Program-made: the position numbers and the translations under genes | Assembly (NCBI RefSeq): GCF_001194135.2 | Contig: NC_068988.1 | Location: 42,655,467-42,719,466 of the forward strand | DNA: 64,000 nt | Origin: Octopus bimaculoides | Taxonomy: Eukaryota | Direction of reading: 5' to 3' | The notes under the pieces: generated by a model | Seen by the model: only the letters and a program-made list of their open reading frames with translations | Database searches by the model: none | What the model was told of the DNA's origin: nothing | Shown: in pieces, positions 1,236-41,664 of the stretch | Numbering within the stretch: position 1 is the stretch's first letter | Layout of the letters: each line of letters opens with the position of its first letter

Positions 1236-1236
1236 G

Positions 1237-1293
<57 letters not shown>

Positions 1294-1329
1294 CATACAT
1301 AGATACATACACACACTCACATAAATGGT

Positions 1330-1989
1330 AATTTCTGTCTGTTACCATCTTGTGCCTACATCAGTGAACCAATCTGGACGAAACTTTGCATACATGTTAA
1401 ACTAACATCCAGTTGATTTATAGGCTAGTTGGATTTCAAATCTATTTGTAAATCTGTCTATTGATCTAATTTATTTTACTTGGATGCATATTCGTTTGTT
1501 AAAATAATATAGGGATATCCCTTATTCACCCACTAATCGAATTAATAGTTTGTAATGCCTATTTTTAGCAATAAACTATTACCATAACGACGGGTTGGGC
1601 ATAAAGACGGGAACTGAACAGGAAACGGGATAGGACATAGAACAGTGTATTGGTAAATGGAAACTGAGAATAACCCCCGCTTTCCCGGTATTACCGGTCA
1701 ACTCATTTATTTTATTCAGATGTGTATTCGTTTGTTAAAATAATATAGGGACATTCCTTATTCACCCACTAATCCTATTAATAGTTTGTGATAGACTATT
1801 ACCATATAGGTTAATAAAATATTAAATGGCTTAATTACACCTAACTGACATAGGATTGGGAATAAGAATGGAAGCGGAACTAAAATGGGAAATGAACAGG
1901 GAACATGATAGGTCATGAAACAGTGTAATGGGGACGGGAACTGGAAATAACCCCCGCTTTTCCGGATATTACCGGGTAATTCAGCTAGT
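1330..1989 (+). mobile_element. Non-autonomous Helitron/Helentron-like element with internal ~236-bp tandem duplication
   Basis: Units start tattcgtttgttaaaataatatagg at 1489 and 1725. The element ends in a ccgg..ccgg hairpin followed by ttcagCTAG|T (1985-1989). Confidence 0.6.
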
Positions 1990-2015
1990 ATATATATATA
2001 TATATAACATATATA

Positions 2016-2180
2016 TTTGACTGCGGCCATCCTGGAGTACCGCCTTTAGTCGAACAAATCGATCCATTCAGAAAGTTTTGGTCGACCCGAGGTTATAGTA
2101 GAAGACACTTGCCAAGGTGTCAGTGGGACTGAACCCGGGACCATGTGGTCGGGAAACAAGCTTCTTACCATACAGACACA
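2016..2180 (-). mobile_element. tRNA-derived SINE family A, partial
   Basis: Reverse complement of the head/tail blocks seen full length at 15645-16035. Confidence 0.75.
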
Positions 2181-2664
2181 TAATTAATGGATCAACAACA
2201 GTTAATAAATTAATATTCCTTTANNNNNNNNNNNNNNNNNNNNNNNNNNNNNNNNNNNNNNNNNNNNNNNNNNNNNNNNNNNNNNNNNNNNNNNNNNNNN
2301 NNNNNNNNNNNNNNNNNNNNNNNNNNNNNNNNNNNNNNNNNNNNNNNNNNNNNNNNNNNNNNNNNNNNNNNNNNNNNNNNNNNNNNNNNNNNNNNNNNNN
2401 NNNNNNNNNNNNNNNNNNNNNNNNNNNNNNNNNNNNNNNNNNNNNNNNNNNNNNNNNNNNNNNNNNNNNNNNNNNNNNNNNNNNNNNNNNNNNNNNNNNN
2501 NNNNNNNNNNNNNNNNNNNNNNNNNNNNNNNNNNNNNNNNNNNNNNNNNNNNNNNNNNNNNNNNNNNNNNNNNNNNNNNNNNNNNNNNNNNNNNNNNNNN
2601 NNNNNNNNNNNNNNNNNNNNNNNNNNNNNNNNNNNNNNNNNNNNNNNNNNNNNNNNNNNNNNNN

Positions 2665-2697
<33 letters not shown>

Positions 2698-3162
2698 ATT
2701 AGTTTGCATAAATATCTCCATGTACTCCGACTTTAAATGTAATCTTTTAAAAGATTTCGAAGAGCGAAAACTAAACTTAAAGATTAAATAGAAATTGGTA
2801 ATCTAGCTACATAACCCATTATTTTACAGTTGCATTATAAAGTTTTATCTGGAAAACTTGCGACTTGTCACGACCAGCAATTAAGGCCGATTGTAGAAAG
2901 CCTCAATTTAAAAAGGTGTAAGACTAAAAGCTAAATGAAGGACAAAGTATGAAATCTAGTAATCACCTGAATCTCACGTCTACTATCTCAATTAACAGGA
3001 ACCAGAGAGAACAGGTGGTTAAGAAGATAGGAGAGAATATTTTAGGAGACCATCTGTTGAAACGATTAGTCAACAGCATATTACAAGGAAACAGTTAATG
3101 TTGAAGTAATTCGTCAAAAGCGGATGTTGCAGAAAAATCCGGTTACATACGAATGAGACCGA

Positions 3163-3245
3163 ACCGGAAGTGACGATTGAAGCAACTTGTGTTGGACAGG
3201 CACGGCTCTTATAAAGACCTTTATTTACATGCATGAATCACTTAC
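3163..3245 (+). promoter_or_regulatory. Candidate core promoter: ETS site, TATA box, Inr-like element
   Basis: ACCGGAAGTG at 3163-3172 overlapping TGACG, TATAAAG at 3210-3216, and TCACTT with its A at 3240 (30 nt after the TATA start), in locally CpG-retaining unique sequence. Motif-based only. Confidence 0.4.
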
Positions 3246-3388
3246 TCATTCTCTTTTACCGTTTTCGCTTGTTTTTCATCCTATGTTGTTTTGTGTGTCA
3301 CATGCTTGCTTGACATATTCGAGGAATCAGTCAACAGTAACTTCAGACAGCATTTTTACTCAATGGACGAGCCACTGTTTATCTCCAG
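3240..3388 (+). other. Candidate first exon of the small-ORF/C9orf72 unit
   Basis: Unique sequence after the candidate promoter, ending at donor CAG|GTACGG (3388/3389). ATGs at 3283, 3302 and 3363. Confidence 0.35.
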
Positions 3389-5019
3389 GTACGGTTGAAT
3401 TCACATTTTTCTGTCTAATAAACTCAGACCATATTATTTCTTTCTATATAATTCATTAGCATGTCTCTCTCATTCTTTCTGTTTACGTTTCACCCGCTCA
3501 CTCAGTTACAACCGTGACTTCATTCGCTCTTATGTTTTTTTGTTTTGTGTTTATTTATCTATATCTCTCATCTCATCTTTTCCGCTCTTTCTCATTACAT
3601 TTTGCTCCTCTCTGTCCCTCGACTTTTCCACTATCATTTTGTCGTTCTATCTCTCATCATTCAACGTCATTCTTTTTTCCTATACATCTCTCTCCTTCCT
3701 ATACATCTCTCTCTATTTTTTCAAAATTTCTCTCCCTGTGATTAACAGTTTTTCATCCCCTTTCTGTCTCTTATCTCTCTCTCAATCTCTATTCTTTTTT
3801 TCTTCTTGTATCTTCTCCACATCTACACTTGAGCTGGTAGAATAACCATGTATGAGTTTCATACATGGTTACTTGACCTGCAAGAAACAGCCACCTAATC
3901 TCCCTCCAGTCACACTATCGTCACTCCAACACACCAAGCAAATAAACTAAGGACACTTTGTATAGTGTTGTGCTTACACGCATTATTTGAACAAAAGTCT
4001 AGACGATCACAGCTGAAATACCTTTGACCATCGCTCTTCCGTACCAAGGTTGACCACGGACTAAACAGCAACTTCCATCCTGTTTATACATCTCCGACTC
4101 TTAATCTCGTTCATGCATGCACACACTTGTTGCATTCTTGAAAAGGATTGTAGTGTCACAATTTTTACGCTAGAGTTTATCTTTATAGTTAGACTTTAGT
4201 ACTATAGCAAAATATATATTATCATACTACACTGTACTACTACATGATTAGTATTTAAGTTAACAACAGCTTTTCAAACTCTGTTTTAAAAGTAATAAGG
4301 CCAATCTCAAACCTCCAAGCGTTGCATGTTTGTGTTTATGTGGCAGTACCTGAAACATTTATGGACACAGTTTCCTTAAATTGAATGATTGTAATTCAGG
4401 TACCAACACTTTTGAGAAGAGGGCAGTTAGTCGATTACTGGAACATTATTTTATCGATCCCGGAGGGATGCAAGGCAAAGTTGACTTGGTCAGGATTTGA
4501 ACTCAGAGTATAAAGGTCTGTAATTAAATACTACAAACTAGTTTGCCCATCACTCTAACATTTCACCAAACCATCACTAAATAATAACATTTGTGTATGT
4601 ATGGTTAAACATTTACATGTGTGTTTGTGTGTATGATTTAAGTATATTCAAGTGTCGAGGTGTTGTTGATATATTTAAAGCAGGGAGTATAAAATACTAG
4701 AAATGGTTAAAGATTAATATTATTATTAGCCATAAACTAATTTCAGCAAGCCTGATTAAGACAACTCCAAGCATGTTTTGATCTTATGAAACCTCCGCAG
4801 TGAATCATAGATTTTCTGGTATTTGCTAAAAGCAGTGATGATAGAATCACCATGTACATGTACAATAATTTAAATTTGAAGTTATACTTGTCTAACCAGT
4901 GACTTGATATGAGACTATGTTAAAATTGAAGCAATTTCATTGGAGAAGTACCATTTTAACAATTTTAAAACATATCAAAATCACTTTTCTTGGTATCTTT
5001 TATCTTGTTATAGTTATTG

Positions 5020-5370
5020 GACTGTGGCCATGCTGGGGCACTGTCTTGAAGAATTTTTATTGAATTGACTGCAGTATTTATTTTTCAAAGTTCAGTATTT
5101 ATGTTATCAGTTTTTTTTGCCAAACTGCTAAGTTACGAGAATGTAACCATACCAACACCAGTTGCCAAGCGGTGGTGGGAGACAAACACAGATGCAATGA
5201 CATACACACATGTATAATAGGCTTCTTTCAGTTTCTTTCTACTAAGTCCACTCACAAGGCTTTGGTAAGCCTAAGACTATAGTAGAAGTCCAAGTCCAAG
5301 GTGTCTTGCAGTGGGACTGAATCTGGAACCATGTGGATAGGAAACAAACTTCTTACCACACAGCCATGCC
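5020..5370 (-). mobile_element. SINE family A, diverged
   Basis: Reverse complement of the family A tail and head, including ccaaggtgtcttgcagtgggactgaatctggaaccatgtgg. Confidence 0.75.
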
Positions 5371-5919
5371 CGTCAATATTTTCTACACATACCTGCTCAA
5401 CTTGATGTCTATAAGAAACTGCCATCCTTTTGTTATTGTATTTGTAGTGTATTTCTGTTGAATCACAGGCTTTTGTTTCAATCAATTTTGAAAATACTGA
5501 AGAATTTTTTAAGATAAAAAAGTCTTGATTGACCATCTGTAACTTTTCTTTTTTTACCTTTTCAAAGCAGTAAAATGTGATTTGAGGTACATTTAGCTGC
5601 TATTTCTAGCAAGTCAAGCAACAGCATAAAAACTCCAGAGTTGGCTTGTAGTAATAAATATTTTGGCCATGATCATCAAGTATAGTATATCTTAATGATT
5701 ATATGTAATTATATATATATTAACATTGTTTTAAGGTCTACTTTTCCATGCTTGCATGATCAGATGGAATTCAATGAGGCAAATTTTCTACAGTTGGATG
5801 TTCTTCCTGTTTGTGAGCAAGCTAATATTTCCCTATAGCTAAACATATCTTTAACAGAAGATAAATGACTCTTGTTTACAACCATCATGTGATATCAAGA
5901 CAAAGACATCCACCCACTT

Positions 5920-6530
5920 GGGTGTCACTCTGAGGACATGTACTAAGAGTGATAAAAATCACATTCACTCAACATCATTATGTTTGGAGTGATCACTCAT
6001 GATGGCAATATTATGCCTCCATTCATCTTCTCATATGGCTTTAAACTCAACACAGAGGCCTACATCAAATGCCTGGAGGTGGTAGTACTGCCCTGGGTCA
6101 AGAATGTGGCTGCTGGGACTCTGCACCATGCCACACAAGCAGGAGGACCCAGTCATGGCTGTCAGACAATTTCTGCGACCACATCACCTCTAACATCTGG
6201 TCACCTAACTCCTCAGACTGCAACTCCCTTAATTATTATGTGTGGGGCGCAGTTGAGCAAGAGACCAACAAAACTCATCGTTGAACTGAAGGCAAGGATT
6301 ATGGCAGCATTCACCAACTTAAACAAGGAGACTATTGAGAAGAGTTGCAGGAGATTCCGAAGTCATCTGGAGGCCGTGGTCGAAGCCAATGGCAATTTTA
6401 TTGAATAAATTTACTCTTTAGTATTTCAAGATATTTTTATGTAATTTGGGTAAATATTTCTGCTAAAATGAGGTCTCAGTGTTATTTTCATTGTTGTGTA
6501 ATTTAGATGACAGTTTATACACCGCACCTT
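5920..6530 (+). mobile_element. Tc1/mariner-superfamily transposase remnant (maT/rosa-like), frameshifted
   Basis: MFGVITHDGNIMPPFIF...DSAPCHTSRRTQSWL...WSPNSSDCNSLNYYVWGAVE...LKARIMAAF...CRRFRSHLEAVVEANG, split across two frames. Confidence 0.85.
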
Positions 6531-6534
6531 GCAT

Positions 6535-6700
6535 ATGGTGTGGCTGTGTGGTAAGTTTGTTCTCCAACCATATAGCTCTGAGTTCAGTCCCACTGTGTGG
6601 TACCTTTCACAAGTGTCTTCTACTATAGCCTTGGGCTGACCAAAGCTTTGTGTGTGGATTTGGTAGATGGAAACTGAAAGGAGCCTGTTGTGTGTGCATA
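6535..6700 (+). mobile_element. SINE family A head
   Basis: ggtgtggctgtgtggtaag...gagttcagtcccactgtgtggtacc...gatttggtagatggaaactgaaag. Confidence 0.75.
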
Positions 6701-6727
6701 CATACATATATACATTTAAAAATTGTT

Positions 6728-7130
6728 GCTTCAAATCGGAGAATAAATGTCATTATGATATATATTATATGCAATTATTATACTATGAGCCTTCCATAGT
6801 AGCTTTCTCTCTGTAACTCGCAAAGTCTTTCGGGTTTGTTTATAAAAATATTATTTATGTAGTATCAAGACAGTTTATATATATATTAACTAAATTTGAC
6901 TGAAATTGATGGGTAAGCGTTTGGCCAATCAGATATACAAGGAGCCATGAAAGCATTGATCTGTGAGTTCGATTTAGCCTGATGTTAGCTCATCATTTTT
7001 CAGTCATTTGTTTATATTTAAAAATTCTCGCTTCAAATCAGAGAATAACTATCACTATGATATACAGTTATTATACTATGAGCCTTCCATAGTAGCTTTC
7101 TCTCTGTAACTTGCAAAGCCTTTCAGGTTT

Positions 7131-7137
<7 letters not shown>
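6728..7137. repeat. Direct repeat of ~110-117 bp, about 300 bp apart
   Basis: gcttcaaatc...tatgagccttccatagtagctttctctctgtaac...gtttgtttata at 6728-6844 and 7030-7137. Confidence 0.85.
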
Positions 7138-7179
<42 letters not shown>

Positions 7180-7180
<1 letters not shown>

Positions 7181-7410
7181 GTGTGTGTGTGTCTGTGTTT
7201 GTACCCCCACTGCTTGACAACCAGTGTTGATGTGTTTCTGTCTCTGTAACTTAGCAGTTCAGCAAAATAGCTTGATAGAATAAGTACCAGACTTTTAAAG
7301 AAAACAAAAAACATAAGGACTGGAGTTGATTAATTTGATTAAAATTCTTCAAGGTGGTGCCCCAGCATGGCTGCTGACTCACAGCTGAAACAAAGAAAAG
7401 ATAAAAGATA
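7180..7410 (+). mobile_element. SINE family A tail
   Basis: gtgtttgtaccccc...gtaacttagcagttcagcaaaa...gaataagtacc...ccagcatggc...gaaacaaag. Confidence 0.75.
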
Positions 7411-7838
7411 GACATAATATATCCAGGCTTTGATGAAACTTGTTCCGGCTATGACCATCCTGTACTGTTTTCAGACATCCTGTATCGAGGACTAGAGATT
7501 TTACTAGTATTGCTAGTGGCTCAAATGACCACTTTAGAAACACTTTGTTGATGTCTACTTCCAATATCAATTAATATAATAAGCAGTGTCTGTATCAGCC
7601 TGCTCTAGTACTTTCACTGTCTGAATTTCAAGAATAAAACTAGCATGACATTTACATAGCTGAGCTATAATACTTCCACTCTGTCTGCATATCTGTGGAA
7701 ACACTAACAAGTTGCTTAGTTCACTGAATACAGAGTAGGAATCTACATAGTTTAAATATCCATTTATAAATTGTATATTTTATTTATTTATTTATTTGTG
7801 TGTATATTTTATTTATTAAATGTTAAAGAGGAACAGGT

Positions 7839-8210
7839 GGAGGTGCAATGGCCCAGTGGTTAGGGCAGCAGAATCGCAGTCATAAGATCACGGTTTCAAT
7901 TCCCAGACTGGGCATTGTGAGTGTTTATTGAGCGAAAACACCTAAAGCTCCACGAGGCTCCGGCAGCAGATGGTAGCGAACCCTGCTGTACTCTTCTACC
8001 ACGACTTTCTCTCACTTTTACTTCCTGTTTCTGTTGTGCCTGTAATTCAAAGGGTCAGCCTTGTCATACTGAATATCCCTGAGAACTACATTAAGGGTAC
8101 ACGTGTCTGTGGAATGCTCAGCCACTTGTACGTTAATTTCACGAGCAGGCTGTTCCGTTGATCGGATCAACTAGAACCCTCGATGTTGTAAGCGACGGAG
8201 TGCCAACAAC
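7839..8210 (+). mobile_element. tRNA-derived SINE family C, full length, 14-bp TSD
   Basis: A box TGGCCCAGTGG, B box GTTTCAATTCCC, AAC tail. TSD aaagaggaacaggt at 7825-7838 and 8214-8227. Confidence 0.9.
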
Positions 8211-8659
8211 ACAAAAGAGGAACAGGTATTTTATTGAATTAATCCCTTTCAGTAGCTTGCCACAAGTAATGAAGTATAAAACTGAACATCACCCATGAGT
8301 TTTCTAGTTTCTGTTTATATCTTTAAGACCATCCTCCTTCTCTTTCAACTGGGGTGGTCATGTATCTTCTCAGAGCAAGATACTTATTCTTGTCCCTGCT
8401 ATCATTCTTAACCTCTTCCCACCTGGCATAAAACCACCTCCTTCAATACTACTCGTCGACCTTGGTTGAGTGATCTTGTCTTGCAAATTACTTGGTAACT
8501 GTGCTAGTGCTGGTATCACGTATAAAACACTCAATACTCTGTAAAGTGGTTAGCGTTAGGAAAGGCACTCAGCCATAGAAACCATGCAAAAGCTGACATT
8601 AGACCTTGGTGTAGTTTTCTGATTTGTTAGCTCCTGTGAAACCATCCAACGCACACTAG

Positions 8660-9000
8660 GTATTGTTTTCAGTTGTGTTTGTTTGTCTATGGACAAGATA
8701 TCACAAAAACCTCTGGATTGATTCGGATGAAACTTTCAGGGATGTTTGGCCTCATGACTGGCAGGAACTGATTAGATTTTAGGATCAATCCAGTACCGGA
8801 AAAGGATTCTGGATTATTTTTCCTGTTTTTTTTTTACTTAATTTTTGAGAGTGGTTGGGTTCATTTTTAGTATCCTTGTTTGTGAGAGTAATCGAGTTTA
8901 TTTTAGATATTCTCATTTTAAAAAATCATTTCCGGCTAATTGTTGAGAGGACATTGGTGTTGCCTTGGCTGTGGTCTGTGCTCTCTGAGTGCTCTTGTTA
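8660..9000 (+). mobile_element. Helentron-associated (HINE/DINE-like) non-autonomous element
   Basis: Starts tgtttgtttgtct...gattcggatgaaactttcaggg and ends ggctgtggtctgtgctctctgagtgctcttgtt. The layout resembles HINE-type elements (recalled consensus). Confidence 0.5.
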
Positions 9001-10149
9001 TTATTATTATCATTATTATTGAGTGAGAGAACAGTGCATGCTATCAAAATGACACTGGAGTACAGATATACAAAGCCCAATATACCCATCATGACAGCCT
9101 GTGTGATAAGGGTGCATCACAACTATATGTGCATGATATGGTGATGTCATATCAAGATAAACAGCGCATGACCTTGCAGGTGGGGCCCAGTTAGAATCTT
9201 CTTCCAGTCAAGTAGCCCATCCCAATATTATTATTTTAATATTATTACCACTTTCATGAAGTTAATTAAATGCTTTCAATTATTCTAGTCATATAGTGAG
9301 GTAAATTTTGCTTTACACTTCATCACTATTCATAAAGGTAATAGCAGTTCACTTGTATAACATTTACTTATATAATTAATTCACTTGGCTTCCATAATGC
9401 ATCATTACCAGGTTACCTTGTAGTATATTTTTTTCCTTTAAGTAATATAGTTTGTGCTATCTGCTGAACTATATGCATGTCTGTAATAAATGTGACGTAA
9501 CATACTGAGGAAATTATATGAAACACTCTTATTAACTGTAACACTTGAGTTATGAGAGCACCAAGTCTAAATTTGGAATGGTTATTATTCTCATTATGTT
9601 CGTCATTTGCCTGTTCTCTTGTTTCATCTTAGCATATCCTGTTTTTCTGTTTTAGTTCCTGCTTATGACAATAACACAGGCATAATAAAGATTTGGTTAC
9701 TATTTTCAGCCAGTTGTATAAACATGTATAGACTCTCTTGTTCATTTCTTGATATATAGATGCTGTCAATACTTTCTTTTGCATTGTCCCACTCGGTGCC
9801 AATGGGTACAAGTAGAAAACATTTCTTGAGGTCTGTCATCAGATAGGAGAGAGGCCCTAATCATGTAGGTAATGGTTTGGGAGGATGTTTTATCTTAGAT
9901 GTACAATAACATATCTTATCCATCTCTGGCTTGATACTTGTGCTTAAGGAGTCCAGAATTTTGTGAGATGTGGCTGCTTGGTAAGAAGTTTGCTTCCTAA
10001 CTACATAATTTTGGCTTCAGTCCCACTCCTTGGCATTAGGGAAAGTGTCTTCTATTATAGCCCCAGGCCAACCAAAGCCTTGTGGTTTTTATTTTGTTGA
10101 TGGAATCTGAAAGAAACCTGTCATATATATATGTGTGTGTGTGTCTTTG

Positions 10150-10690
10150 TGTTACTGTTTCCTTGCCTTGACGTCACTGTCATGTAAAGTGTCTTTTGTT
10201 GTCAATCCTCTGTGAAAACATTTCTGCTCTTGAGGAAATATTACATTACTTGGAAACTTGAAAGTGTAGCTGACAAGAAAGGCATCCAATTGTAGAAAAT
10301 TTGCCTCAACAAATTCTGTCTGAGCCATGTGAGCATTGAAAAAGTCATCATTATTATCATCATCATCATCGTTTAGCGTCTGCTTTCCATGCTGGCATGG
10401 GTTAGACAGTTTGACTGGAACTGGTAAGCCAGAAAACTGCACCAAGTTCCAGTCTGATTTGGCCTGCTTTCTACAGCTGGATGCCCTTTCTAACCCTAAC
10501 CACTCCAAGAGTGTAATGGATGCTTTTTACGTACTACTGGCACAGGTGCTTTTATGTGTCATTGGCATGGATGCTGGTTACATGATACCAGCATTGGCCA
10601 CGACTATGATTTCATTTTGCTTGATGAACCTTCTCAAGCACGGCATATCGCCAAAGGTCTCAGTTGCTTGTCATTGCCTCTGTGCGGCCC
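10150..10690. mobile_element. Two RTE-tail repeat (family D) fragments, tail to tail across an (ATC)n tract
   Basis: + copy ends aaggcatccaattgtagaaa...gagcattgaaaaagtc. - copy begins catcatcgtttagcgtctgctttccatgctggcatggg. Confidence 0.7.
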
Positions 10691-11435
10691 AACTTTTGAA
10701 GATCATGCTTCACCATGTTGTCCCATGTCTTCCTGGGTCTACCTCTTCCACGATGATGATGATGCCTTTGACTACTGACTTCCAGCTGAGCTTCTTACAA
10801 GAGTCAAAATGATTGTTACTGGCAACTGATCTGTTCCAGTCTCTTCTTTCCCTCCCCACACCAACACTAACTCACTTTAACCCCTGTAGTCATAGATAAA
10901 AAAGTAAAACTATTTTTTAATTTTTATTTTTTATTTATACCAAAATACAAGTAAATAACACACATTGAGTAAATTTTTCAAGAATTCAATATTCAATATG
11001 CTTAATTTTTGGCATGGATAATTAAAAATTTGCTAACACTAGATAAAAAAATATCAATTTACTTAGCTCTGTGAAATTTACAAGAAGCCGCAGCCATTCT
11101 GTATGACTTGTGAGCAAACACTGAGTCAGAATCATGTGGTCTCCGTTATTTATGTGTTTTAGAGGTGTCCAATGAATTGGTAACTGTGATTCAAATTAAT
11201 TACAATTTATATTTGTTTTGTAATTTATGCTGAAAATTGTCCAATACATTGAACAAAGTAAAGAACAAGAAAAGGAAGGATTCTATAAAAAAAATAAAAG
11301 ATAATGAGAGCCAAATTGATTTATCTTTGTGGACTTTAGTCTAAATTTGATACTACCCTCTACTTTTAAATCAAAAACACACATCTTGTTCCTTCATTGT
11401 GATACTGGTATACTTGATATACATACATATATATA

Positions 11436-11471
<36 letters not shown>

Positions 11472-12343
11472 TGTATGTATGTATGTATGTATGTATATAT
11501 AAATATANNNNNNNNNNNNNNNNNNNNNNNNNNNNNNNNNNNNNNNNNNNNNNNNNNNNNNNNNNTATATATACACTCAAATGGTGCTATTTACGGGCCA
11601 CTAGCAGGAAGCCAGACAGCTGCTTTGGCAATGAACATGCTCGGACAGTGCTGCTAGTGCTCCACTGGTGCAGGTGCCAGTCATCGAGTATGGTTCAATT
11701 ACGATTTCGATTTCACTTGCCCCAACAGGTCTTCGCAAGTAGAGTTTAGTGTCCAATGAAGGAGAGGTTGGCATGGGTGCCAGTCGTTGGATTCGGTTCG
11801 ATTTCAGATTCCAGATTTCAAATTGCAAATTCACTTACCTCAACAGGTCTTCACAAGCAGAGTTTTTAGTGTCCAATGAAGTAAAGATACGAATAAGTGA
11901 GCTGGCTACACTTCTGGCAGAGCTCACAGATTATGCTCTCACTTGCCTTACCAGGTCTTCTCACGTACTGCATATTTCCAAAGGTCCCGGTCACTGGTCA
12001 NNNNNNNNNNNNNNNNNNNNNNNNNNNNNNNNNNNNNNNNNNNNNNNNNNNNNNNNNNNNNNNNNNNNNNNNNNNNNNNNNNNNNNNNNNNNNNNNNNNN
12101 ATGGAAAGCGGATGTTAAACGATGATGATGATGATGATGTGTGTGTGTGTATGTATATATGTGATGGGGCAGTCTATATAGATGTAATCCCCGTAATTTG
12201 AAACCAGTTGCTAAGTGCCAATGCATGAAACTGAGCCCTTCAGTCACTCTGTCACTTGTGCTGATTATATAATATGTATTTATGTATTATACATATTAAA
12301 TTTCTCATAAATCTCTTTTCTTTCTTCCAGTTCTATCACGTGA

Positions 12344-12706
12344 TGTTATGAAAGACTTGTGACGGAGAATCTTGAAATTGTTGAAAAGTCTGGAGACGTT
12401 GAATATATTTTGTCAACCCCCTGTCAGGAGCAGGTTCCAATGAAGGTTGACTGGATTACAGAGGTTGTCAGTCGTGACAAAGTCATCATCTTGCTTGTTA
12501 ATTATGCCTTCTTGCTTGTAGTAGTTGCCAGTTTCATGATTTTTCTCCTCTACCTAACGCAAGACCTCTCCCCAAATATCAACTGGTCGGCATCACTGAT
12601 GCTCTTAGCTGCAGCTTTTGTTATAGCTAATATGTTTCTGGCCAGCTACATTGTCCAAGTGCTACATGTACGTAATGAACTGCCCATGATATACTTTCAG
12701 TCTTGA
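12344..12706 (+). CDS. Unknown small membrane protein with two predicted TM helices (88 aa from ATG 12440; frame open from 12344)
   Basis: 363-nt open frame in unique sequence. Hydrophobic segments VIILLVNYAFLLVVVASFMIFLLYL and WSASLMLLAAAFVIANMFLASYIVQVL. Strong acceptor tctcttttctttcttccAG at 12330. No family recognised. Confidence 0.55.
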   Translation, partial: CYERLVTENLEIVEKSGDVEYILSTPCQEQVPMKVDWITEVVSRDKVIILLVNYAFLLVVVASFMIFLLYLTQDLSPNINWSASLMLLAAAFVIANMFLASYIVQVLHVRNELPMIYFQS

Positions 12707-12773
12707 AAGTTTGTCATCTGTTCTGTCAACCTAATCCTCTTCCATCCATATCATTTTATTTTTGTCTTCACAA

Positions 12774-12880
12774 GTGAGAAATTACAATCAAGTTAATTGG
12801 ACCAGTTTGTTTTAGTATTTACTAACGCATACATATTGATGCTTGGTACACTCATACATTTGTTCTTTCTCTCGCTTTAG
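12774..12880 (+). other. Candidate 107-nt intron between the small ORF and C9orf72
   Basis: Donor AA|GTGAGA (12774), branch point TACTAAC (12820-12826), polypyrimidine tract, and the first AG after the branch point is at 12879-12880. Confidence 0.55.
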
Positions 12881-13070
12881 ATACTAATATATATATGTTT
12901 TTGTATGTGAATATTAATCTTATTCTATCTGGATTACACTTATATTTATGTGTATATATGTGAATATATAATGGAAGATAATTCCAAATTAATTCAAATA
13001 AAGATAAAATTAGGTGATACATTATAAACGTTTTAATAAGAAAGTTAAAATTTTAGCTTCATCCATTACC

Positions 13071-13646
13071 ATGGAGACACAAGCTAACAAAAATGACACT
13101 TACATTTCAAGTTTGAAAATCAAACCTGACTATTCACATTCTTCTCACTTATCCCCACCACAAAATCTTCTTTACCCCACGGACCAAAGCAAACAACTGG
13201 ACCCAACTGCTTCCTCATTACTGAGTCCTTGTTCAAAATATACAGTGTCACAGCTTGTGGACAGCGCACAGATCCTTGTCTCAACATTTGTGTTCAGTCA
13301 CTGGGACAACATCCTTGGACCTCGAGTTGAGCAAGTGTGGTTCAATGGTGAGGCTCTTCTGCTCGATCAAAGCACCCTTCTGCAGATCTGTAAGCAAGGT
13401 TTAGCTGGAGAACTATGTCGGGACTTAAGCAGCAGTATTACTGATTGGCGCATCCATACCATTCCGGACAAAAATGTTGCTGCGGTTGTATTTGTGTTCA
13501 GTGCTAATGGAACCAATGGCCTTTCTTTACATAGCTTCACTTTGATTATACAGTTGGACCAACTTGAATATTTTCTCCACCTCTCCGATCTTATCTACAG
13601 CTGGATTAGCCGGATGGTTGGTAAACTACGTGTACTTCTTGAGAAG
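13071..13646 (+). CDS. C9orf72: C9orf72 orthologue, coding exon 1 (192 codons)
   Basis: ATG in accATGg context after acceptor ttttAG (13056). STFVFSHWDNILGPRVEQVW matches the C9orf72 hallmark FAYWDNILGPRV. Donor AAG|GTAAGC, phase 0. Confidence 0.95.
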
Positions 13647-14099
13647 GTAAGCAATCTATATCATTTCTTTTCTCTTTCTATTTATCTATATTGCTGGTGA
13701 CCTAATAAACAATGCAAGTGAGTGTCAGGAAAGCAAAGTAGTCAGTTTAAAAGGTTCAGGGATCTCTTAACTCTATTGGCATTGAAAAGTTTCTTTCTTT
13801 GAGTGTAAGGCAGATATAGGTTGGTTGGTCAGCCTGAGACTAGAGAAGAAGGTACTTACCCAGGGTGCCATGTAGTAGGACTGAACCCAAAACCATGTGC
13901 TGGGAAGTGAACTTCTTTAACCACAAGCCATGCCTGTAGCTCAGTTATTTAATAATAAAGATTTTTTTTTATATGGGCACAAATTCAGAAATTCTGTGGC
14001 GTGAGAACAATCAATTATATTGATTCCAGTACTTCACTGTTACTTGTTTTATCAACAAATGAGATCAGCATTGGTGAGATTTGAATTCAGAACTTATAA

Positions 14100-14335
14100 A
14101 AGGCGGTGAGCTGGCAGAAATGTTAGCGCACTGGGCGAAATGCTTAGCGGTATCTCGTCTGTCTTTACGTTCTGAGTTCAAATTCCGCCAAGGTTGACTT
14201 TGCCTTTCATCCTTTCGGGGTCGATAAATTAAGTACCAGTTACGCACTGGGGGTCGATGTAATCAACTTAATCCCTTTGTCTGTCCTTGTTTGTCCCCTC
14301 AATGTTTAGCCCCTTGTGGGCAATAAAGAAATAAG
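14100..14335 (+). mobile_element. SINE family B (Deu/Nin-like core), young copy nested in an older antisense copy
   Basis: aggcggtgagctggcagaaatgttagc...gttgactttgcctttcatcctttcggggtcgataaattaagtacc. Flanks are pieces of a - strand family B copy. Domain name from recalled consensus. Confidence 0.8.
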
Positions 14336-14960: not shown

Positions 14961-15405
14961 CTGTTCTACTTTAGGCATAAAGCCTGAAATTTTGGTGGAA
15001 GAGGGATAGTCGATTACATCAACCCCAGTGTTCAACTGCTACTTATGTAATTGGCTCTGAAAGGATGAGAGGCAAAGTTAGCCTCGACGTAAATTGAACT
15101 CAAAATATAAAGAGGGATGAATACTACTAAGTATTTTGTCTGGTGTGCTAACGATTCTGCCAGCTCACCACCTTTAATAGTAATAATAATAATAATCCCT
15201 TCTACTATAGACACAAGGCCTGAAATTTGCGGGGAGGGGATAGTCAGTTACATTGACCCCAGTGTGTAACTGGTATTTATTTCATCGAACACTGAAAAGA
15301 TGAGAGACAAAATCGACCTTGGCGGAATTTGAACTCTGAACATAAGGACAGACAAAATGCTGCTCTGCATTTTGCCCAGCGTGCTAACAATTCTGCTACC
15401 TTGCC

Positions 15406-15452
<47 letters not shown>

Positions 15453-15605
15453 TGTTTCTAATTTAAGCCCAAAGGTCAGCAGTTTTGATTGGAGGGCATT
15501 AGTCAATACTATTGACCCCCACCCCCCAATACCTGACTGGTGCTTTATTTTATCAACCCTGAAAAGATGAAAGGCAAAGTTGACTTTAGTGGGATTTGAA
15601 CTCAG
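14700..15605 (-). mobile_element. Train of four family B SINE copies separated by (AAT)n/(GAT)n
   Basis: Copies at about 14700-14890, 14960-15175, 15195-15405 and 15450-15605, all in the same orientation. Confidence 0.8.
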
Positions 15606-15644
15606 AACATAAAGAACCATAAAAAAAAAATGAACAAAATAAAT

Positions 15645-16035
15645 AGGTGCAGGAGTGGCTGTGTGGTAAGCAGCTTGCTTACCAACCACATGGTTCTGGA
15701 TTTAGTCCTACTGCGTGGCACCTTGGGCAAGTGTATTCTACTTATAGCCTCAGGCCGGCCAAAGCCTTGAGTGAATTTGGTAGATGGAAACTAAAAGAAG
15801 CCTGTCGTATATATGTGTATGTTTGTGTGTCTGTGTTTGTTCCCCCATCGTCACATGACAACCAATGTTGGTGTGTTTACGTCCCTGTAACTTAGCGGTT
15901 CGGCAAAAGAGACCTATAGAATAAGTACTAGGCTTACAAAGAATAAGTCCCGAGGTTGATTTGTTTGACTAAAAGGCAGTGCTCCAGCATGACCACAGTC
16001 AAATGACTGAAACAAATAAAAGAATAAAAGAATAA
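15645..16035 (+). mobile_element. SINE family A, full length
   Basis: tRNA-like head ggagtggctgtgtggtaag..., central ccttgggcaagtg block, (TG)n, and tail ending gaaacaaataaaagaataaaagaataa. Confidence 0.9.
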
Positions 16036-17972
16036 ATGAATTAAAATATATTGTTTGCATGAAAAAAGTAATTGAAATTTTCTTCTCCTACATACATAAA
16101 TGGTACAAAGGAAAGATAATTATTCACTAACAAAAGCCACCCAATAGATGAAAAGAGTTCATTCAAGCTGATAGATGTCTGATTCTAAATTCTATAGAAT
16201 GATAGAATAATTGTAAGGTAATTCTTTTCACTCTGTAATCCTTATATTTACACGTAAAAACAAATGAAACAATAGACCATGTTCATTATTAAATTAAATT
16301 CATTTCAATATTTAGGTATTTAATGAGTGTTAGCATGGCAATGTGACTAACAAATTCACTTTGCAACAGTGGGCCTCTTAAGTTCAATCCCATAGCACAG
16401 CACCTTGGACAAGTGTCTTCCATCAAAGCTTTTGGGTTGGCTAATGCCTTGTGACAGTATCAGTTAAGTACTGGGGTCAATATAATTGACTGGTCTCTCT
16501 CTACAAAATTCCTGACTTTGTGCCTATTTAAGAAAACCTTTATCAATAAATGATAGCAGTGCAGGCATGGTTGTATGGATTATGAAGTTCACTTTCCAAC
16601 CGCATGGTTTTGGTTTCAGTTCCCATTGCATAACACCTTGGGCAAGCAAATGTCTTCAACTGTGTGTGTCCTGACAATAACTGTAAATGAGTGGAAGATG
16701 ATAAAAGGTGTGGATGTCCCTCCCCACTCTCTGTATGTATGTATGTATGTGTGTGTGTATGTATGCATATATATATATATGGGAGAATATACAAATAATA
16801 ACAACAGACGAGGACAGGTGGTGTAAATAACAAAAGTATATATTAGTAAAGGAATTTATATGTAATGACCATTATTTTTAACTTGTCTCTTATATATCAT
16901 TCTGTAAAAAACAGTTTATCTGAAGCCCATCCATGGATTTACAATATAGAATTGTGATGAACCATAACTTGGGACCCTACCAAAAGATTACTGGGAGTTT
17001 TTTTGTTATCTTGGTCTGCCTACAGAGAGCTCATGAAGTATTTTGCTTGGATTGATAATTCTTCACTATTTGTTCTGTGTGTGTGTGTGTGTGTATCTGT
17101 ATATGGCTATATGGTTAAGGCAAGTGTCTTCTGCTGCAACCTTAGGCTGTCCAAAGCATCCAGCCATAAAAAAGAAATCTGTCACACAAAAAGTACTAAA
17201 CACACACACACACACACACACACATCTACACAACTATGTGTAGGTAGTGTTGTTAATAAGTTTGCTTCTCAACCATGTGGTTTCAGGTTCAATTCCACTG
17301 CATGATACTCTGGGCAAGTGTCTCGTGTCTTCACCTGTGATATTGTGAGTGAACAAACAAAAGGAAGTTGAGAGAAATTTGGCAGAAGTTAACCAATAAT
17401 ATCAACAACAGCAACAACTTATTGATGTTATTGATTAACCTCAATAAGTGATTGGACATACTCAATGGTGCATAATGGCACAAGAGTGTCTGATTGAAGA
17501 GTATTTGATCATTTCTACCAGTCTCCATCTACCGTCACATTTCCAATGTGGAGCATGTTAACCTTAGATGTCACACTTAAGACCTGTTTATGATTCCTCT
17601 ACCTCAGCTTATAAAGAGAGATCTTACATCTATATTGATTAGGTGTAGACGCTACATGTAAGTTCTCAAGCTGATTTTATATCTGATACTTCGTCAATAA
17701 ACAAACCCATCTGCTGTTTGGGAGTGACCCACAAATTTTGTACATGTAATTTTAGTTAAATTTCAGTGTATAATTAAACATTGACAGGCATACTATTGTA
17801 AGTGTTAAGACTATACAAACTTGGACACTATTTTAAAGAGAGTAAGGAAATTGTTCAAAAAAGATTTGTCTTGAAGAGGACTATGGGACTTGTTCTGTGC
17901 AGTTCCTATTTCATATAAATGAAGTGTTTGTTGTTGGATATTTGGCTGCTGTGTTGAACAAGTTGAACCTTT

Positions 17973-18179
17973 ATTATTCAGATTACTCTTTCAAATGTAA
18001 TACTTATTTATATTGTTTTGAGTTGATCATACATTATCTCATAACTTTGACATTTTATACGATTATTTATTTTGAGAATGATATAGGGTAGGTGTGTGAG
18101 GCCAGATCTGGCAGATTTGTGCATAAACCAAGTAGAATATTTGGGTTGGATACAGCCAGTTTAAATGCTAAAGGGTTAA
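17973..18179. mobile_element. TTAA-terminated (piggyBac-like) MITE family copy
   Basis: Ends aatgctaaagggTTAA. Same body as 36481-36701 and 42286-42482. Confidence 0.65.
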
Positions 18180-18426
18180 GGAACTACGTAGATGCTCTGT
18201 TGATGATTCATAGTGTCCGTATTATGAAGATAATGTGGATCTTGTGAAAAAATTTAGCTATTATGTGGGATAGGTTGAGGAACTACATGTAAGATGTTTT
18301 GGTGGTTTGTGTGCCCCCTCCCTGCCATAAACATTTGAGGATTTAGCTGCTGCTTTGAGCAGGTTCATTGACCATGTAGAAGCTTTCTGACTGCAATTTT
18401 TTTCTACATTCTTCTGTCTGTTACAG

Positions 18427-18528
18427 GATTCTAGAAATGAAGCTCTGTCTGTATTTACATCTTACCTGTGTAATTTTACAGAGATGCTGCTATCTTTGAG
18501 TGAAGCTAAGCTACCAACTGAAGTTGAA
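18427..18528 (+). CDS. C9orf72: C9orf72 coding exon 2 (34 codons)
   Basis: ttacAG|DSRNEALSVFTSYLCNFTEMLLSLSEAKLPTEVE|GTAAGT, aligning to vertebrate MELLSSMKSHSVPEEID. Phase 0/0. Confidence 0.9.
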
Positions 18529-18689
18529 GTAAGTAAAACAAAGTTTTATGTTTCTAGTCTGTGTGTGCATGCAAGATATGTGTTTATCTCCACATAGGTA
18601 CAGGTGTGGCTCTGTGGTTGAGAGGTCTGTTTCCCAACCATATGGTTTTTGTTTCAGTCCCATTGCTTGGCACATTAGTGTCTTCTGTT

Positions 18690-18960
18690 ATGGCCCTCTG
18701 AATGGATTTAGTGGTAATGATGATAGGTCATGTGATGCAGATGGATGCCAACAGCTCCATCTGTTGGCATCTCTCTCAAAGTGGATGGAAGTGCCATTCT
18801 CTCAAAGTGGATGGAACACATGGAAGTGAGAGACTCAGGAAGACATGGGACGAAGTACTGAAGAACAACCTCAGGACACTGAATCTTTCAGGTGAGATAA
18901 TGAAGAACCAAGATGCCTGGTGCCTTGCTGTATTCAAGAAAATCCGTACTCTGCAGCAGA
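18690..18960 (+). mobile_element. RTE LINE 3' coding remnant
   Basis: GHVMQMD...CHSLKVDGTHGSERLRKTWDEVLKNNLRTLNL, homologous to the 3' end of the RTE at 30230-31790. Confidence 0.8.
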
Positions 18961-21900
18961 ATTGTTAAGACTGATCGTTCTATTGGTGTAAAGCACTCAT
19001 GGTGACATGTAAAAGCCCCATGGAGTTCCACATAAAAACACTTGTGCGGTGCCACATAAAAGCATCCAGCATACTCTGTAAAGTGGTTAGTATTAGGAAG
19101 GACATCCAGCTGTAGAAACTGTCAGCACCAGTATTGCAGTCAAAACATCTTGTAATCACATGAGAGCATTTGTGTGTGTGTCTTTGTGTCTGTGTTTGTA
19201 CTCCACCATCGCGCGACAACGGATATTGGTGTATTTATGTCCATATAACTCAGTTGTTTTGGTAAAAAAGACCAATAGAATAAATACCAGGTTTAAAAAA
19301 AGAACTAGTGTTGATTCATTGGGTTAAACATTCCTCAAGGCAAGTGCTTCAGCATTGTTGCAGTCTAATGACTAAGACAGTGACACAACATAAACACAAA
19401 ACCATGTATGTATTTATTTCAGGCATCCACTCAGTTTCAGTCTAACAAATTCCACTTAAACAGTTATTGATCAACCTGGAAGTATGGCACAAGACTGTTG
19501 CCTGTGGTGCCATACTTAGAATTGAACTCAGAAATGTGTATTTGTGAAGCAGACATCTTAACTACATACTTATGTGTATACTTATGTACACACATACACA
19601 TATCATTATCATATATCACCATCATTGTCATTGTTTTAATGTTCATTTTTCCATGCTTGCGTGGGTTGGATAGTGCATGTTGCTGCAGATTTTCTATGGC
19701 TGGATGGCCCTCCTGTTGCCAACCCTCACTTGTTTCTGAGCAAGGTAATATTTCCCCATGAGCAGACATGTTTTCATGGAAGATTGGAAATGAAGGGCAC
19801 CACTTGCATGACAGTGGCATTCATTCACAACTAACATATAATGTCAAGTCAAAGCAACACAAGCTCTTTCTCTTTCTCACTCTCACACACACATATTAGC
19901 AATCTGTGTATCATACTTGAAGCGTATGTACTGATGAAAGCCTTCTAAATTGCAGTATTTGCCTTAAAAAAAGCATCCCTTATAGATGTATAATATTAAA
20001 AACATAAATTTATCAGCAGCAGGCAAAATTCATCAACCAACAGTGATGTCATTACTAAATCCAGATTTCTGCTTTTTTGAGGTTTCATCAGTAGCAAGTA
20101 TCCACTATCACTGCTTGACAAACATAAATTGGCTGCTAACTGATATAGCTAAATAGAGATTGAAAGGTCTTAGATGTCACACTTAACCAGCAGACTGGAT
20201 AAAAACCTAAATCCAGAACCATGTAGTTGGGAAAAACCTAAATCCAGAACTATGTAGGTGGTGTTTGCTTATTNNNNNNNNNNNNNNNNNNNNNNNNNNN
20301 NNNNNNNNNNNNNNNNNNNNNNNNNNNNNNNNNNNNNNNNNNNNNNNNNNNNNNNNNNNNNNNNNNNNNNNNNNNNNNNNNNNNNNNNNNNNNNNNNNNN
20401 NNNNNNNNNNNNNNNNNNNNNNNNNNNNNNNNNNNNNNNNNNNNNNNNNNNNNNNNNNNNNNNNNNNNNNNNNNNNNNNNNNNNNNNNNNNNNNNNNNNN
20501 NNNNNNNNNNNNNNNNNNNNNNNNNNNNNNNNNNNNNNNNNNNNNNNNNNNNNNNNNNNNNNNNNNNNNNNNNNNNNNNNNNNNNNNNNNNNNNNNNNNN
20601 NNNNNNNNNNNNNNNNNNNNNNNNNNNNNNNNNNNNNNNNNNNNNNNNNNNNNNNNNNNNNNNNNNNNNNNNNNNNNNNNNNNNNNNNNNNNNNNNNNNN
20701 NNNNNNNNNNNNNNNNNNNNNNNNNNNNNNNNNNNNNNNNNNNNNNNNNNNNNNNNNNNNNNNNNNNNNNNNNNNNNNNNNNNNNNNNNNNNNNNNNNNN
20801 NNNNNNNNNNNNNNNNNNNNNNNNNNNNNNNNNNNNNNNNNNNNNNNNNNNNNNNNNNNNNNNNNNNNNNNNNNNNNNNNNNNNNNNNNNNNNNNNNNNN
20901 NNNNNNNNNNNNNNNNNNNNNNNNNCATACATTCATACATACATACATACATACATACATACATACATACATACATACATACCCCTGCCCCTCTCATAAT
21001 TCCTTGTCTTGCGAGTTACTTGGTGACCCTGCCAGTGCTGGTGCTACATAAGAAGCATCCAGTTCACACTGTAAAGTGGTTGGCATTTAGAAGATCATCC
21101 AGCTGTAAAAATCATGCCAAAACTAACCTTACATGTGCTAGTGCCACGTAAAAAGCATTGACCCCACTCTGCAGAGTGGTTGGTGTTAAGAAGGGTATAC
21201 AACCATAAAGACCCTGCCAAAACAGATACAGTAGCATATTTTTTCCACCTTATTTTGCATTTATGTGCTCACCTGTGTATTTATATATATTATCATTATT
21301 ATTTAAAACAGTTTGATTTGGCCATGTGCAACTTCAAGTTTCATAGGCTTCATACAGAAACCTGTTTTAAATAATATATGTAACCCCTAAATGTGTTGAG
21401 TGCCTTTTTCTTTAATTTGTCCACTCACCTGTATATATACATATGTACACACATACACACACACACACACACACATATAGCTGATATATCAGATAATCGT
21501 CATCACAAATTGATGTTACCCGTCACTCTATTGATTAATTGATTAAGTGTATATAGAAGCTGATGACTTTCATGTATTGATTGTTAGAGACACACTGTGA
21601 TGAATTGATTTTCATCATTGAAGAGACTGGTGTTTTATGGTTGCAGGTAAGACTTGATTTGTGTGATGTGACATCACCTGTTTGCTTTATTTCTGTATCT
21701 CTCTTTCTCTCTCTCTCTCTATATGTGTGTGTGTGTGTGTGTTTTTGTGTGAGTGTGAGGAGGGTGTGTAGCCATGGTTACATTGACATCAGAGCAGGCT
21801 GGAACAGAATGGAACACTAGTTTGCCAAACTGTTGTTATGGTTGAAATAATGATTTTTCTTTTTTCTTGGTGGNNNNNNNNNNNNNNNNNNNNNNNNNNN

Positions 21901-22439: not shown

Positions 22440-23021
22440 CCAACAATTTTGATGTGAGGGGGGAAAGTTGATTGTATCAACCTCAGTACTTGACTGATCC
22501 TTTATTCTATTGACCCTTAAAAATGATGAAAGGCAATTGACTTCTGTAGCATTTGAACTCAAACTATATTTTATAGGCAGTGAGCTGGCAGTAATGTTAG
22601 CACACCGGGCGAAATGCTTAGCAGTATTTCGTCTGTCTTTACGTTCTGAGTTCAAATTCTGCTGAGGTCGACTTTGCTTTTCAACCTTTTGGGGTCGATA
22701 AATTAATACTGGGGTTGTTCTAATCGACTGCCCACCCCACTCACAAAATTTTGGGCCTTGTACCTAGAGTAGAAAAAAAACAACATTATTATTTTATTAT
22801 TATTAAGGTGGTGAGCTACTAGCAGAAACGTTACCACCCTGGACGAAATGCTTAGCGGTATTTTGCCTGTCACTCCATTCTGAGTTCTAATTCTGGCGAG
22901 ATTGACTTTGCCTATCATCATTCCAGGGTCGGTAGAATTAGTACCAGTTATGCACTGGGTTTGATGAAATTGTGTCACCTCTTCCCCCCAAAATTTCTGC
23001 CCTTGTGGAAAATTTTGAAAC

Positions 23022-23052: not shown

Positions 23053-23645
23053 TTCTTATTATTAAGGCATTGAGCTGGCAGAATTGTTAACATGCCAGGC
23101 AAAATGTTTAGCGGTATTTCATCCGTCTTTGCGTTCTGAGTTCAAATTCTGCCAAGGTCAACTTTGCCTTTCATCCTTTCGGGGTTGATGAAATAAGTAC
23201 CAATGAAACACTGGGGTTGATGTAATTGAGAAGCCCCACAACACTCCCTCGAAAGTTTCAAGCCTTGTGCCTATAGTACAAAAGGTTATTATTATAATCT
23301 ACCAGGGGGTTGGTATTAAGAAGGGCTCTTGTCAAACCATCCCATCTGTGCCAGCATGGAAGGCAGATGTTAAATAATGATGATTATCATTTTTATTATG
23401 ATTATCATCATCATTAATAACAATAATAATCCTTTCTACTGGAAGCACAAGGCCTCAAATTTGGGAGAAGGGATTAAGTCAATTACATCGACTCCAGTGC
23501 ATAACTGGTACTTATTTTATTGACCCTGAAATGATGAAAGGCAAAGTTGACCCCGGCGGAATTTGAACTGAGAATGTAGCAGCAGATGAAATGCTGCTAA
23601 GCATGTTGCCTGGCATGCTAGCAATTCTGCCAGCTCACCACTTAA
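22440..23645. mobile_element. Cluster of five family B SINEs in both orientations inside (TAC)n/(ATT)n tracts
   Basis: - copy ~22440-22560; + copies ~22575-22760, 22805-23010 and 23065-23290; - copy ~23430-23645. Confidence 0.8.
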
Positions 23646-26235: not shown

Positions 26236-26775
26236 TGAATGAAGTTTCTACCAACACCTTTTCTACAGATCAAACAGGGCCACCTACCTGAAGGGGTTTG
26301 TGATTTGTCAGCCTTCCTACTTACTAAGACTTTGGTTTTTGCTGGGTTAACTGCAAGGCACTTTATCTCATTTAATATACACATGCACCCATGCTGGTAC
26401 CACATAAAAAACGTTCAGTACATTCTGTAGAGTGGTTGGCATTAGAAAGAATATCCAGCTGTAGAAACCATGCCCGAGCAGATAATGGAGCCTTTTGCAG
26501 CCCCAGGCCTTACCAGCTGAGGTCAAACTGTCTAACCCATGCCAGCATGTAAAACAGACGTTAATCGATGATGATGATTTAAATGTGCACTGCTATTAGT
26601 TTCATGTCTCTGCAAATAGAATGATCAGACAAGCCTGTAGAGCATTCCTTGTATTTTCAGACAATCATTCAGATTCCATCGGGATGGTGGTAATGATCTG
26701 AGTAAGGAATTGGTAAATTTGGTGGTGGTTATTGTGATCATGATTTATTGTGTTCATTCTGTCCTCTTCCACCAG

Positions 26776-41265: not shown

Positions 41266-41312
<47 letters not shown>

Positions 41313-41621: not shown

Positions 41622-41664
<43 letters not shown>

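Follow-up and report, generated by a model that had tools for sequence, protein, structure and literature searches.

A predicted two-helix membrane microprotein encoded directly ahead of C9orf72 in molluscs and an annelid: a probable ancient bicistronic gene

Background

In mammals, PYURF and PIGY (PreY-PIGY) are encoded by a bicistronic mRNA, and PIGY is a protein of 71 amino acids (aa) with two transmembrane (TM) helices. Here we describe what is probably an arrangement of the same type in 64,000 nucleotides (nt) of the Octopus bimaculoides genome (RefSeq assembly GCF_001194135.2, contig NC_068988.1, positions 42,655,467 to 42,719,466 of the forward strand; the whole stretch is called the window and is counted from its first letter). 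A small open reading frame (ORF) of 88 codons, predicted to encode two TM helices, lies there directly 5' of the first coding exon of C9orf72. As in PYURF/PIGY, one mature mRNA would carry two unrelated, separately conserved ORFs, with a tiny two-TM protein as one of the products. The two systems differ in that the small membrane protein of the mammalian pair is the downstream cistron and its partner gene is a different one; nor is there a sequence relationship, since searches of Pfam and PDB with our protein profile gave no match.

MIEF1-MP, SLC35A4-MP, ASNSD1-uORF and SNURF-SNRPN also share with our locus a small conserved ORF that precedes the main coding sequence (CDS) in the 5' leader; in those systems it yields a stable protein. 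However, neither the vertebrate upstream-ORF (uORF) microproteins nor SNURF-SNRPN involve C9orf72, and the non-overlapping spacer of 62-560 nt found here is longer than in most uORF-microprotein cases. The operons of nematodes and tunicates that are resolved by spliced-leader (SL) trans-splicing are similar in having two genes, one promoter and a short intergenic distance. Their pre-mRNAs are cut to monocistronic mRNAs, whereas here mature intron-free contigs retain both ORFs, and we know of no SL trans-splicing in molluscs or annelids.

The polycistronic nature of animal genes has been discussed (PMC5932603), and in Drosophila a bicistronic small-ORF transcript encodes Sloth1 and Sloth2, with a weak upstream AUG and a stronger downstream one, the products acting in the same pathway (PMC9681215). 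That transcript resembles ours in being an ancient and conserved one of an invertebrate, with a weak first and a stronger second AUG, and the shared pathway of its products is a precedent for expecting a functional link here. The Sloth cistrons, however, both encode small paralogous peptides, lie within a few nucleotides of each other and are served by leaky scanning, while here the second cistron is a DENN-family protein of 460-540 aa with many AUGs intervening. The type of arrangement, in which a conserved ORF for a microprotein precedes the main CDS, is already known from PYURF/PIGY, SNURF-SNRPN, MIEF1-MP and Sloth1/2.

The small ORF as a coding sequence

The original prediction, made from the letters of the window alone, had placed a two-TM ORF of 88-121 aa on a spliced exon just upstream of C9orf72, and every coordinate it gave is correct (12330, the stop at 12706, 12774, 12820, 12880, 12997, 13056, 13071 and 13646). 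On the forward strand the pyrimidine tract ctcttttctttcttcc is followed by AG at 12329-12330, a strong candidate 3' splice site; a similar acceptor, ttttctttttatag, stands about 90 nt 5' of the small-ORF ATG in the genomic locus L025 (the recovered contigs and loci are labelled L001, L002 and so on). An open frame of 363 nt spans 12344-12706 and closes with TGA at 12704-12706; its first in-frame ATG, at 12440, leaves 88 codons. The length of the 363-nt frame alone carries no significance: in the window, frames open for 121 codons or more number 27, mostly within microsatellites and transposon remnants, against a mean of 2.0 in composition-matched shuffles.

The argument for coding comes from comparison. 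A word-indexed protein search returned a single match, an 88-aa protein 99% identical to ours, carried on L001, a 1.8-kb contig of a close relative (Logan SRR11869390) that is colinear with window positions 12170-13691, intron included. The small ORFs of the two agree in 87 of 88 residues and differ by 6 synonymous changes and 1 non-synonymous change, which gives a ratio of non-synonymous to synonymous substitution rates (dN/dS, or omega) of 0.045, well below the value of 1 proposed as a check in the original prediction. Stops or frameshifts in the ORF of a related species had been named there as evidence to the contrary, and L001 has no indel within the 88 codons. From ATG 12440 to TGA 12706 the DNA is 97.4% identical, while the flanks are indel-rich at 70-89%; conservation begins just 5' of the ATG and collapses directly past the TGA. 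Elsewhere in the family, L021 and L013 are separated by 48 synonymous changes and 1 non-synonymous change, L005 and L014 by an omega of 0.036, and in some pairs synonymous change is saturated. The C9orf72 exon of the window, compared with L001, is 94.8% identical with a dN/dS of 0.05. Judging from these substitution patterns, 12440-12706 is a genuine protein-coding cistron under strong purifying selection, and the small ORF and the C9orf72 ORF both evolve as protein-coding sequence.

Two other readings of the exon were tried and rejected. L001 retains the candidate acceptor before 12331, and in the stretch 12386-12425 its indels put the frame out of register. Because the frame 5' of ATG 12440 is thus disrupted and conservation is bounded by the ATG and the TGA, the real product would be 88 aa; the shorter end of the predicted size range stands, and the 120-aa version (12344-12706), with the predicted upper limit of 121 aa, does not. 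Nor can the ORF be the terminal coding exon of a gene further upstream and encode the C-terminus of its protein, because all three frames are closed by stops within ten codons of 12331, in L001 as well as in the window. The exon also carries two overlapping mini-uORFs at 12343-12362 (ATG TTA TGA and ATG AAA GAC TTG TGA), both of which L001 retains.

The product is laid out as MKVDWITEVVSRDK, TM1, the loop TQDLSPNINWS, TM2 and HVRNELPMIYFQS. The two hydrophobic helices read from the letters reappear as hydropathy peaks at about residues 15-38 and 51-75 (Kyte-Doolittle, 19-residue window) and as a helical hairpin in an AlphaFold2 model (H4-43 and H49-86, mean pLDDT 72). On this modelling, the microprotein is a predicted membrane protein with two TM helices and a short loop.

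A family of two-helix microproteins

The distant relatives were reached by phmmer, run exhaustively on 1.84 billion representative proteins, together with a profile search; the word-indexed search gave just the 99% relative. The phmmer search yielded 5 credible relatives, all of 80-120 aa, and the profile built from these five led to 19 clusters, or 18 after one truncated 49-aa match is set aside. The members are two-helix hairpin proteins of 80-95 aa; helix 1 follows the shared pattern NRE-a-L-v-x-L-x-v-NYaFFSVvv, helix 2 the pattern AnFlV, and N21, Y22, F24, F60 and A68 are invariant. They occur in cephalopods, in caenogastropods (Littorina, Nucella), in a heterobranch slug (Plakobranchus) and in an annelid (Lamellibrachia), and the family is so far known from lophotrochozoans only. 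No annotated cephalopod member was among the matches of these protein searches.

The original prediction did not recognise the protein, and our searches agree. Pfam gave unrelated hydrophobic families only, all below threshold (best E 0.0037, for one member); a profile search of PDB gave no relative (best E 2.6, a designed protein), and Foldseek against PDB no significant fold match (best E 2.7). Our literature searches returned no report of the microprotein or of a natural bicistronic C9orf72. Neither the microprotein family nor its association with C9orf72 appears to have been described before.

One locus is odd. In L024 (962-1414, Logan SRR17988786) the gene call for the small ORF is 150 aa long, running beyond the usual start as well as the usual stop, and the locus is flagged because its translation is not exact to the query; a lost stop codon, a variant in the sequence or a fault of the assembly may be the cause.

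Association with C9orf72

The downstream gene had been named as C9orf72 from its letters. The window exon, which begins with ATG 13071 in a strong context (accATGG), indeed matches human C9orf72 (PDB 6LT0_C and 7O2W_A) at E values of about 1e-12 to 1e-13, and the 494-aa protein of L015 matches 6LT0_C at E = 4.6e-53 (residues 64-484 against 22-468). Domain PF15019 scores 21.9 bits on the window exon alone, a partial sequence, under the 27-bit cut-off; it is recorded on the products of L012-L016, L018, L021, L022 and L025. A blastn of L015 on the window gives the same exon blocks as the tblastn on which Table 1 is based, and one exon (residues about 366-397) was not located in the window by tblastn of the L015 protein. 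On this similarity, the downstream gene is the C9orf72 orthologue.

A homologue search with a check of C9orf72 synteny, as the original prediction had suggested for cephalopods and other molluscs, found the family with the same neighbour: in 11 of 11 recovered loci the small ORF shares the strand of C9orf72 and immediately precedes its first coding exon, with spacers of 62-560 nt (Table 1). By this comparison the arrangement is probably older than the split between molluscs and annelids. The spacers of Plakobranchus and L025 leave practically no space for a separate terminator and promoter.

Three lineages (L015-L020, L021 and L022) have both complete ORFs on spliced RNA contigs, which are short-read assemblies and not single molecules. 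L015-L020 are contigs of 2.4-2.6 kb from six different runs, with Illumina adapter remnants at some ends. They carry an 88-aa ORF at 181-447, 73% identical to that of the window, and an uninterrupted 494-aa C9orf72 CDS at 1008-2492. The CDS of L015 maps to separate exons across 25 kb of the window, from which we conclude that the contigs represent spliced transcripts. L021 joins the small ORF to a 538-aa CDS, which falls into 8 exon blocks in the Plakobranchus genome with the small ORF as a separate block, and L022 joins it to a 459-aa CDS. The bicistronic contigs were retrieved via the small ORF, and isoforms that lack it are invisible to such a retrieval.

The 62- and 83-nt spacers, the L005 and L013 spacers without any canonical poly(A) hexamer, and adjacency across two phyla together argue strongly for a single transcription unit. 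Orthology, that is selection, synteny, the RNA contigs of three lineages and the short spacers, also supports the original proposal that one mRNA carries the membrane protein and then C9orf72, and by the same comparison the window species would make this bicistronic RNA.

The spacer and the passage from one ORF to the next

Between the two ORFs the window is 83-89% identical to L001, which is roughly the neutral level. L001 keeps the GT and AG of the candidate mini-intron and the candidate acceptor at 13056, while its TACTAAC box has lost one base. Splicing from 12773 to 13057 would leave a spacer of 81 nt without an AUG, close to the 62-83 nt of other lineages. In the cephalopod genomic contigs L002 and L004 a T-rich (pyrimidine) tract followed by AG likewise stands 16 nt 5' of the C9orf72 ATG, and the similarity of L015 to L002 begins at that point. 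The spacers of two related heterobranch slugs differ by about 340 nt (L021, 554-961; L013, 10289-10350). That of L021 has catGTAAGT 11 nt past the stop and aaacAG 12 nt 5' of the C9orf72 ATG, and from these motifs the longer spacer looks like a retained intron.

The original prediction also remarked that the junction after 12773 lies 67 nt past the stop, with regard to nonsense-mediated decay. The distance is correct; the remark itself carries little weight, because on a bicistronic mRNA every exon junction of C9orf72 is already 3' of the small-ORF stop.

The small-ORF AUG of the window has a weak context (ccaATGa) and that of C9orf72 a strong one (accATGg), and this order of weak then strong holds for the cephalopods and for L022. 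Spacer AUGs are not significantly depleted: the window has 6 ATGs against about 6.5 calculated by hand from base composition, while L022 has 1 and L025 none in spacers that are short. Neither a stable fold of the spacer (z = -0.86) nor any Rfam match in a scan of the whole window was obtained, and hence there is no evidence for a structured internal ribosome entry site.

We can now outline how such a gene might work. In the window species a non-coding upstream exon would probably be spliced onto 12331. Ribosomes loaded at the cap would translate the microprotein first, from its weak-context AUG, and could then reach C9orf72 by re-initiation over a short spacer, in octopods over the 81 nt left by splicing 12774 to 13056. 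Re-initiation after splicing is in our opinion an attractive, if unproven, hypothesis. The main alternative route to C9orf72 would be an isoform that skips the small-ORF exon.

Alternative explanations

We consider it quite probable that the small ORF is a microprotein cistron in the 5' leader of C9orf72, that one mRNA carries both, and that this bicistronic gene predates the mollusc-annelid split. Several observations weigh against this. De novo RNA assemblies can fuse same-strand neighbours with overlapping untranslated regions (UTRs); the annotators of four genomes called the small ORF a separate gene; our RNA contigs come from related lineages, the window species itself being covered here by DNA; and the exact 88-aa protein of the window is absent from the protein collection searched. 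In cephalopods the spacers, at 364 and 560 nt, are long and hold 6 AUGs each, about the chance number, and the window small ORF itself contains 7 AUGs, so that simple leaky scanning or re-initiation on unspliced RNA looks inefficient. The L015 spacer does appear to be unspliced, because it is apparently colinear with the related genomic DNA of L002.

These could instead be two independent but tightly packed genes, the small one polyadenylated within the spacer and C9orf72 transcribed from a promoter of its own, the spanning contigs being read-through products or assembly fusions. The separate gene models of Plakobranchus, Lamellibrachia, Littorina and Nucella would agree with this, as would the AATAAA at 12997 and the AATAAA or ATTAAA present in the spacers of L015, L021, L022 and L014. 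However, such hexamers are expected by chance at 70-80% A+T; the one in the window is AATAGA in L001, and AATAAA/ATTAAA was not found in the spacers of L005 or L013, so that no conserved poly(A) signal between the ORFs, sought in these three loci, was found. Spacers of 62 nt (L013) and 83 nt (L025) are too small for a terminator plus a promoter, and the spanning contigs recur across many runs and three lineages. We regard two separate genes as improbable. The same loss of the hexamer bears on a suggestion of the original prediction that finds little support, namely that one promoter makes two proteins by terminal-exon choice, with AATAAA offering an alternative 3' end. In its full form, this would mean mutually exclusive mRNAs, a microprotein isoform whose poly(A) site lies in the spacer, and a C9orf72 isoform that skips 12331-12773 and joins at 13057, the bicistronic RNA being minor. 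The candidate acceptor 14 nt 5' of the C9orf72 ATG, retained in L001, and the tract with AG of L002 and L004 do speak for it, as do the non-coding first exons that are spliced to the ATG-bearing exon in human C9orf72. Against it we have the poly(A) signal that is not conserved, recovered contigs that are bicistronic (though fetched through the small ORF), and Plakobranchus, which has no AG in the 30 nt before the ATG and a spacer of just 62 nt. Exclusive isoforms, too, we regard as improbable.

A position in the leader of C9orf72 would also suit an ORF that is merely a cis-acting regulatory uORF, or a chance frame, with a peptide devoid of function; frames of this length do arise by chance about twice per window. 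It is hard to reconcile with this that five residues (N21, Y22, F24, F60, A68) and the two-helix architecture are conserved between phyla, that dN/dS stays at 0.04-0.05 while synonymous change has reached saturation in some pairs, and that 88 codons with two hydrophobic helices are unlike the known stalling peptides. We give this explanation very little credence.

Features of the window and of related loci

Table 1. Elements of the small ORF-C9orf72 region of the window, recovered loci with their spacers, and annotated relatives of the microprotein
Feature, locus or protein	Window coordinates or accession	Strand	Remarks
Non-coding leader of small-ORF exon	12331..12439	+	starts at candidate acceptor AG 12329-12330; two mini-uORFs (ATG 12343, ATG 12348)
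88-codon cistron, predicted two-TM-helix hairpin microprotein	12440..12706	+	conservation, dN/dS, AlphaFold2 model
Intercistronic spacer	12707..13070	+	364 nt, 74% A+T, 6 ATGs
Candidate mini-intron	12774-12880	+	107 nt; GTGAGA 12774-12779, TACTAAC 12820-12826, next AG 12879-12880
AATAAA hexamer	12997-13002	+	within spacer
Second candidate acceptor	AG 13055-13056	+	14 nt 5' of C9orf72 ATG
First coding exon of C9orf72	13071..13646	+	192 codons; human C9orf72 match; donor GTAAGC at 13647
Remaining C9orf72 coding exons	18424-18531, 26773-26913, 29451-29570, 32519-32707, 37143-37256, 38335-38517	+	approximate tblastn blocks, L015 494-aa query
Window			genome under study; spacer 364 nt
L001			close relative, genomic; spacer ~400 nt
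L005			caenogastropod group, genomic; spacer 348 nt
L024			caenogastropod group; C9orf72-like gene directly downstream, same strand
L014			ENA contig, 457 kb; spacer 376 nt
L013			Plakobranchus genome; spacer 62 nt
L012			Lamellibrachia genome; spacer ~430 nt
L025			genomic; spacer 83 nt, no AUG
L015-L020			RNA contigs, second cephalopod; spacer 560 nt
L021			RNA contig, heterobranch slug; spacer 408 nt
L022/L023			RNA contigs; spacer 220 nt
Lamellibrachia satsuma protein	LSAT2_000519		annelid; 'hypothetical protein'
Plakobranchus ocellatus protein	PoB_002104700		heterobranch slug; 'hypothetical protein'
Littorina saxatilis protein	KAK7100967.1		caenogastropod; 'hypothetical protein'
Nucella lapillus protein	KAL8582203.1		caenogastropod; 'hypothetical protein'

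Upstream of the small-ORF exon, positions 1-12000 offered repeats, N gaps and microsatellites only, and neither an upstream neighbour gene nor a first exon was identified in them. Runs of N (assembly gaps) lie beside microsatellites at 12001-12100 and at about 2220-2700, 20270-20930, 23980-24790, 41310-41640, 52220-52540 and 54030-54800. The gap at 12001-12100, which has (TGA)n and (TG)n microsatellites next to it at 12120-12160, sits 230 nt 5' of the candidate acceptor, and the upstream intron or first exon may be partly absent from the assembly there.

A SINE-like repeat of about 150-180 bp is present in at least 20 copies in the window, on both strands, with 74-89% identity and many copies inside C9orf72 introns (14080-14260 on the forward strand and about 19 others, such as 22552-22706, 23064-23223, 28127-28247, 60193-60351 and 61346-61498). 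ARAGORN found no tRNA, and the repeat had no match in Rfam. Within a C9orf72 intron a reverse-transcriptase fragment (31025-31414, reverse strand; Pfam RVT_1, E = 3e-13) is probably a LINE remnant. The ORFs at 5980-6405 (forward) and 58281-58658 (reverse) have the look of a transposase or integrase by eye, and Pfam gave no match for them. In Lamellibrachia (L012) a gene for a MADF-domain protein lies downstream of C9orf72 on the opposite strand (15044-20306, reverse), and the annotated C9orf72 model of this worm, at just 300 aa, is probably incomplete.

Implications

If our reading is correct, the locus is a rare case of a deeply conserved animal bicistronic gene. It also exposes a gap in annotation, the cephalopod protein being unannotated among our matches and its relatives elsewhere going under 'hypothetical protein'. 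The region of the human gene that corresponds to the small-ORF leader, namely the non-coding first exons and first intron of C9orf72, carries the pathogenic repeat. A small ORF in the 5' leader of C9orf72 may hence interest those who study translation in the human repeat region, although we do not claim a mechanistic link.

C9orf72 is intensively studied owing to amyotrophic lateral sclerosis (ALS) as well as frontotemporal dementia (FTD), and the membrane targeting of its complex is only partly understood. The microprotein is a concrete and testable candidate partner of C9orf72, being on the same mRNA in molluscs and immediately upstream in the annelid. That the two ORFs have stayed so closely coupled for so long suggests that their products cooperate, for instance on membranes of the lysosomal or autophagic system. 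One may go further and speculate, tentatively and with the odds against it, that the microprotein has served the C9orf72 complex since ancient times as a dedicated partner at the membrane, for instance by anchoring or regulating it at lysosomes or autophagosomes. It would then have stayed on the C9orf72 mRNA from before the mollusc-annelid divergence because selection favoured co-expression of the two in fixed proportions, and vertebrates would have lost the microprotein, relocated it or altered it past recognition. Were this true, the microprotein would be a missing membrane-side component of C9orf72 biology.

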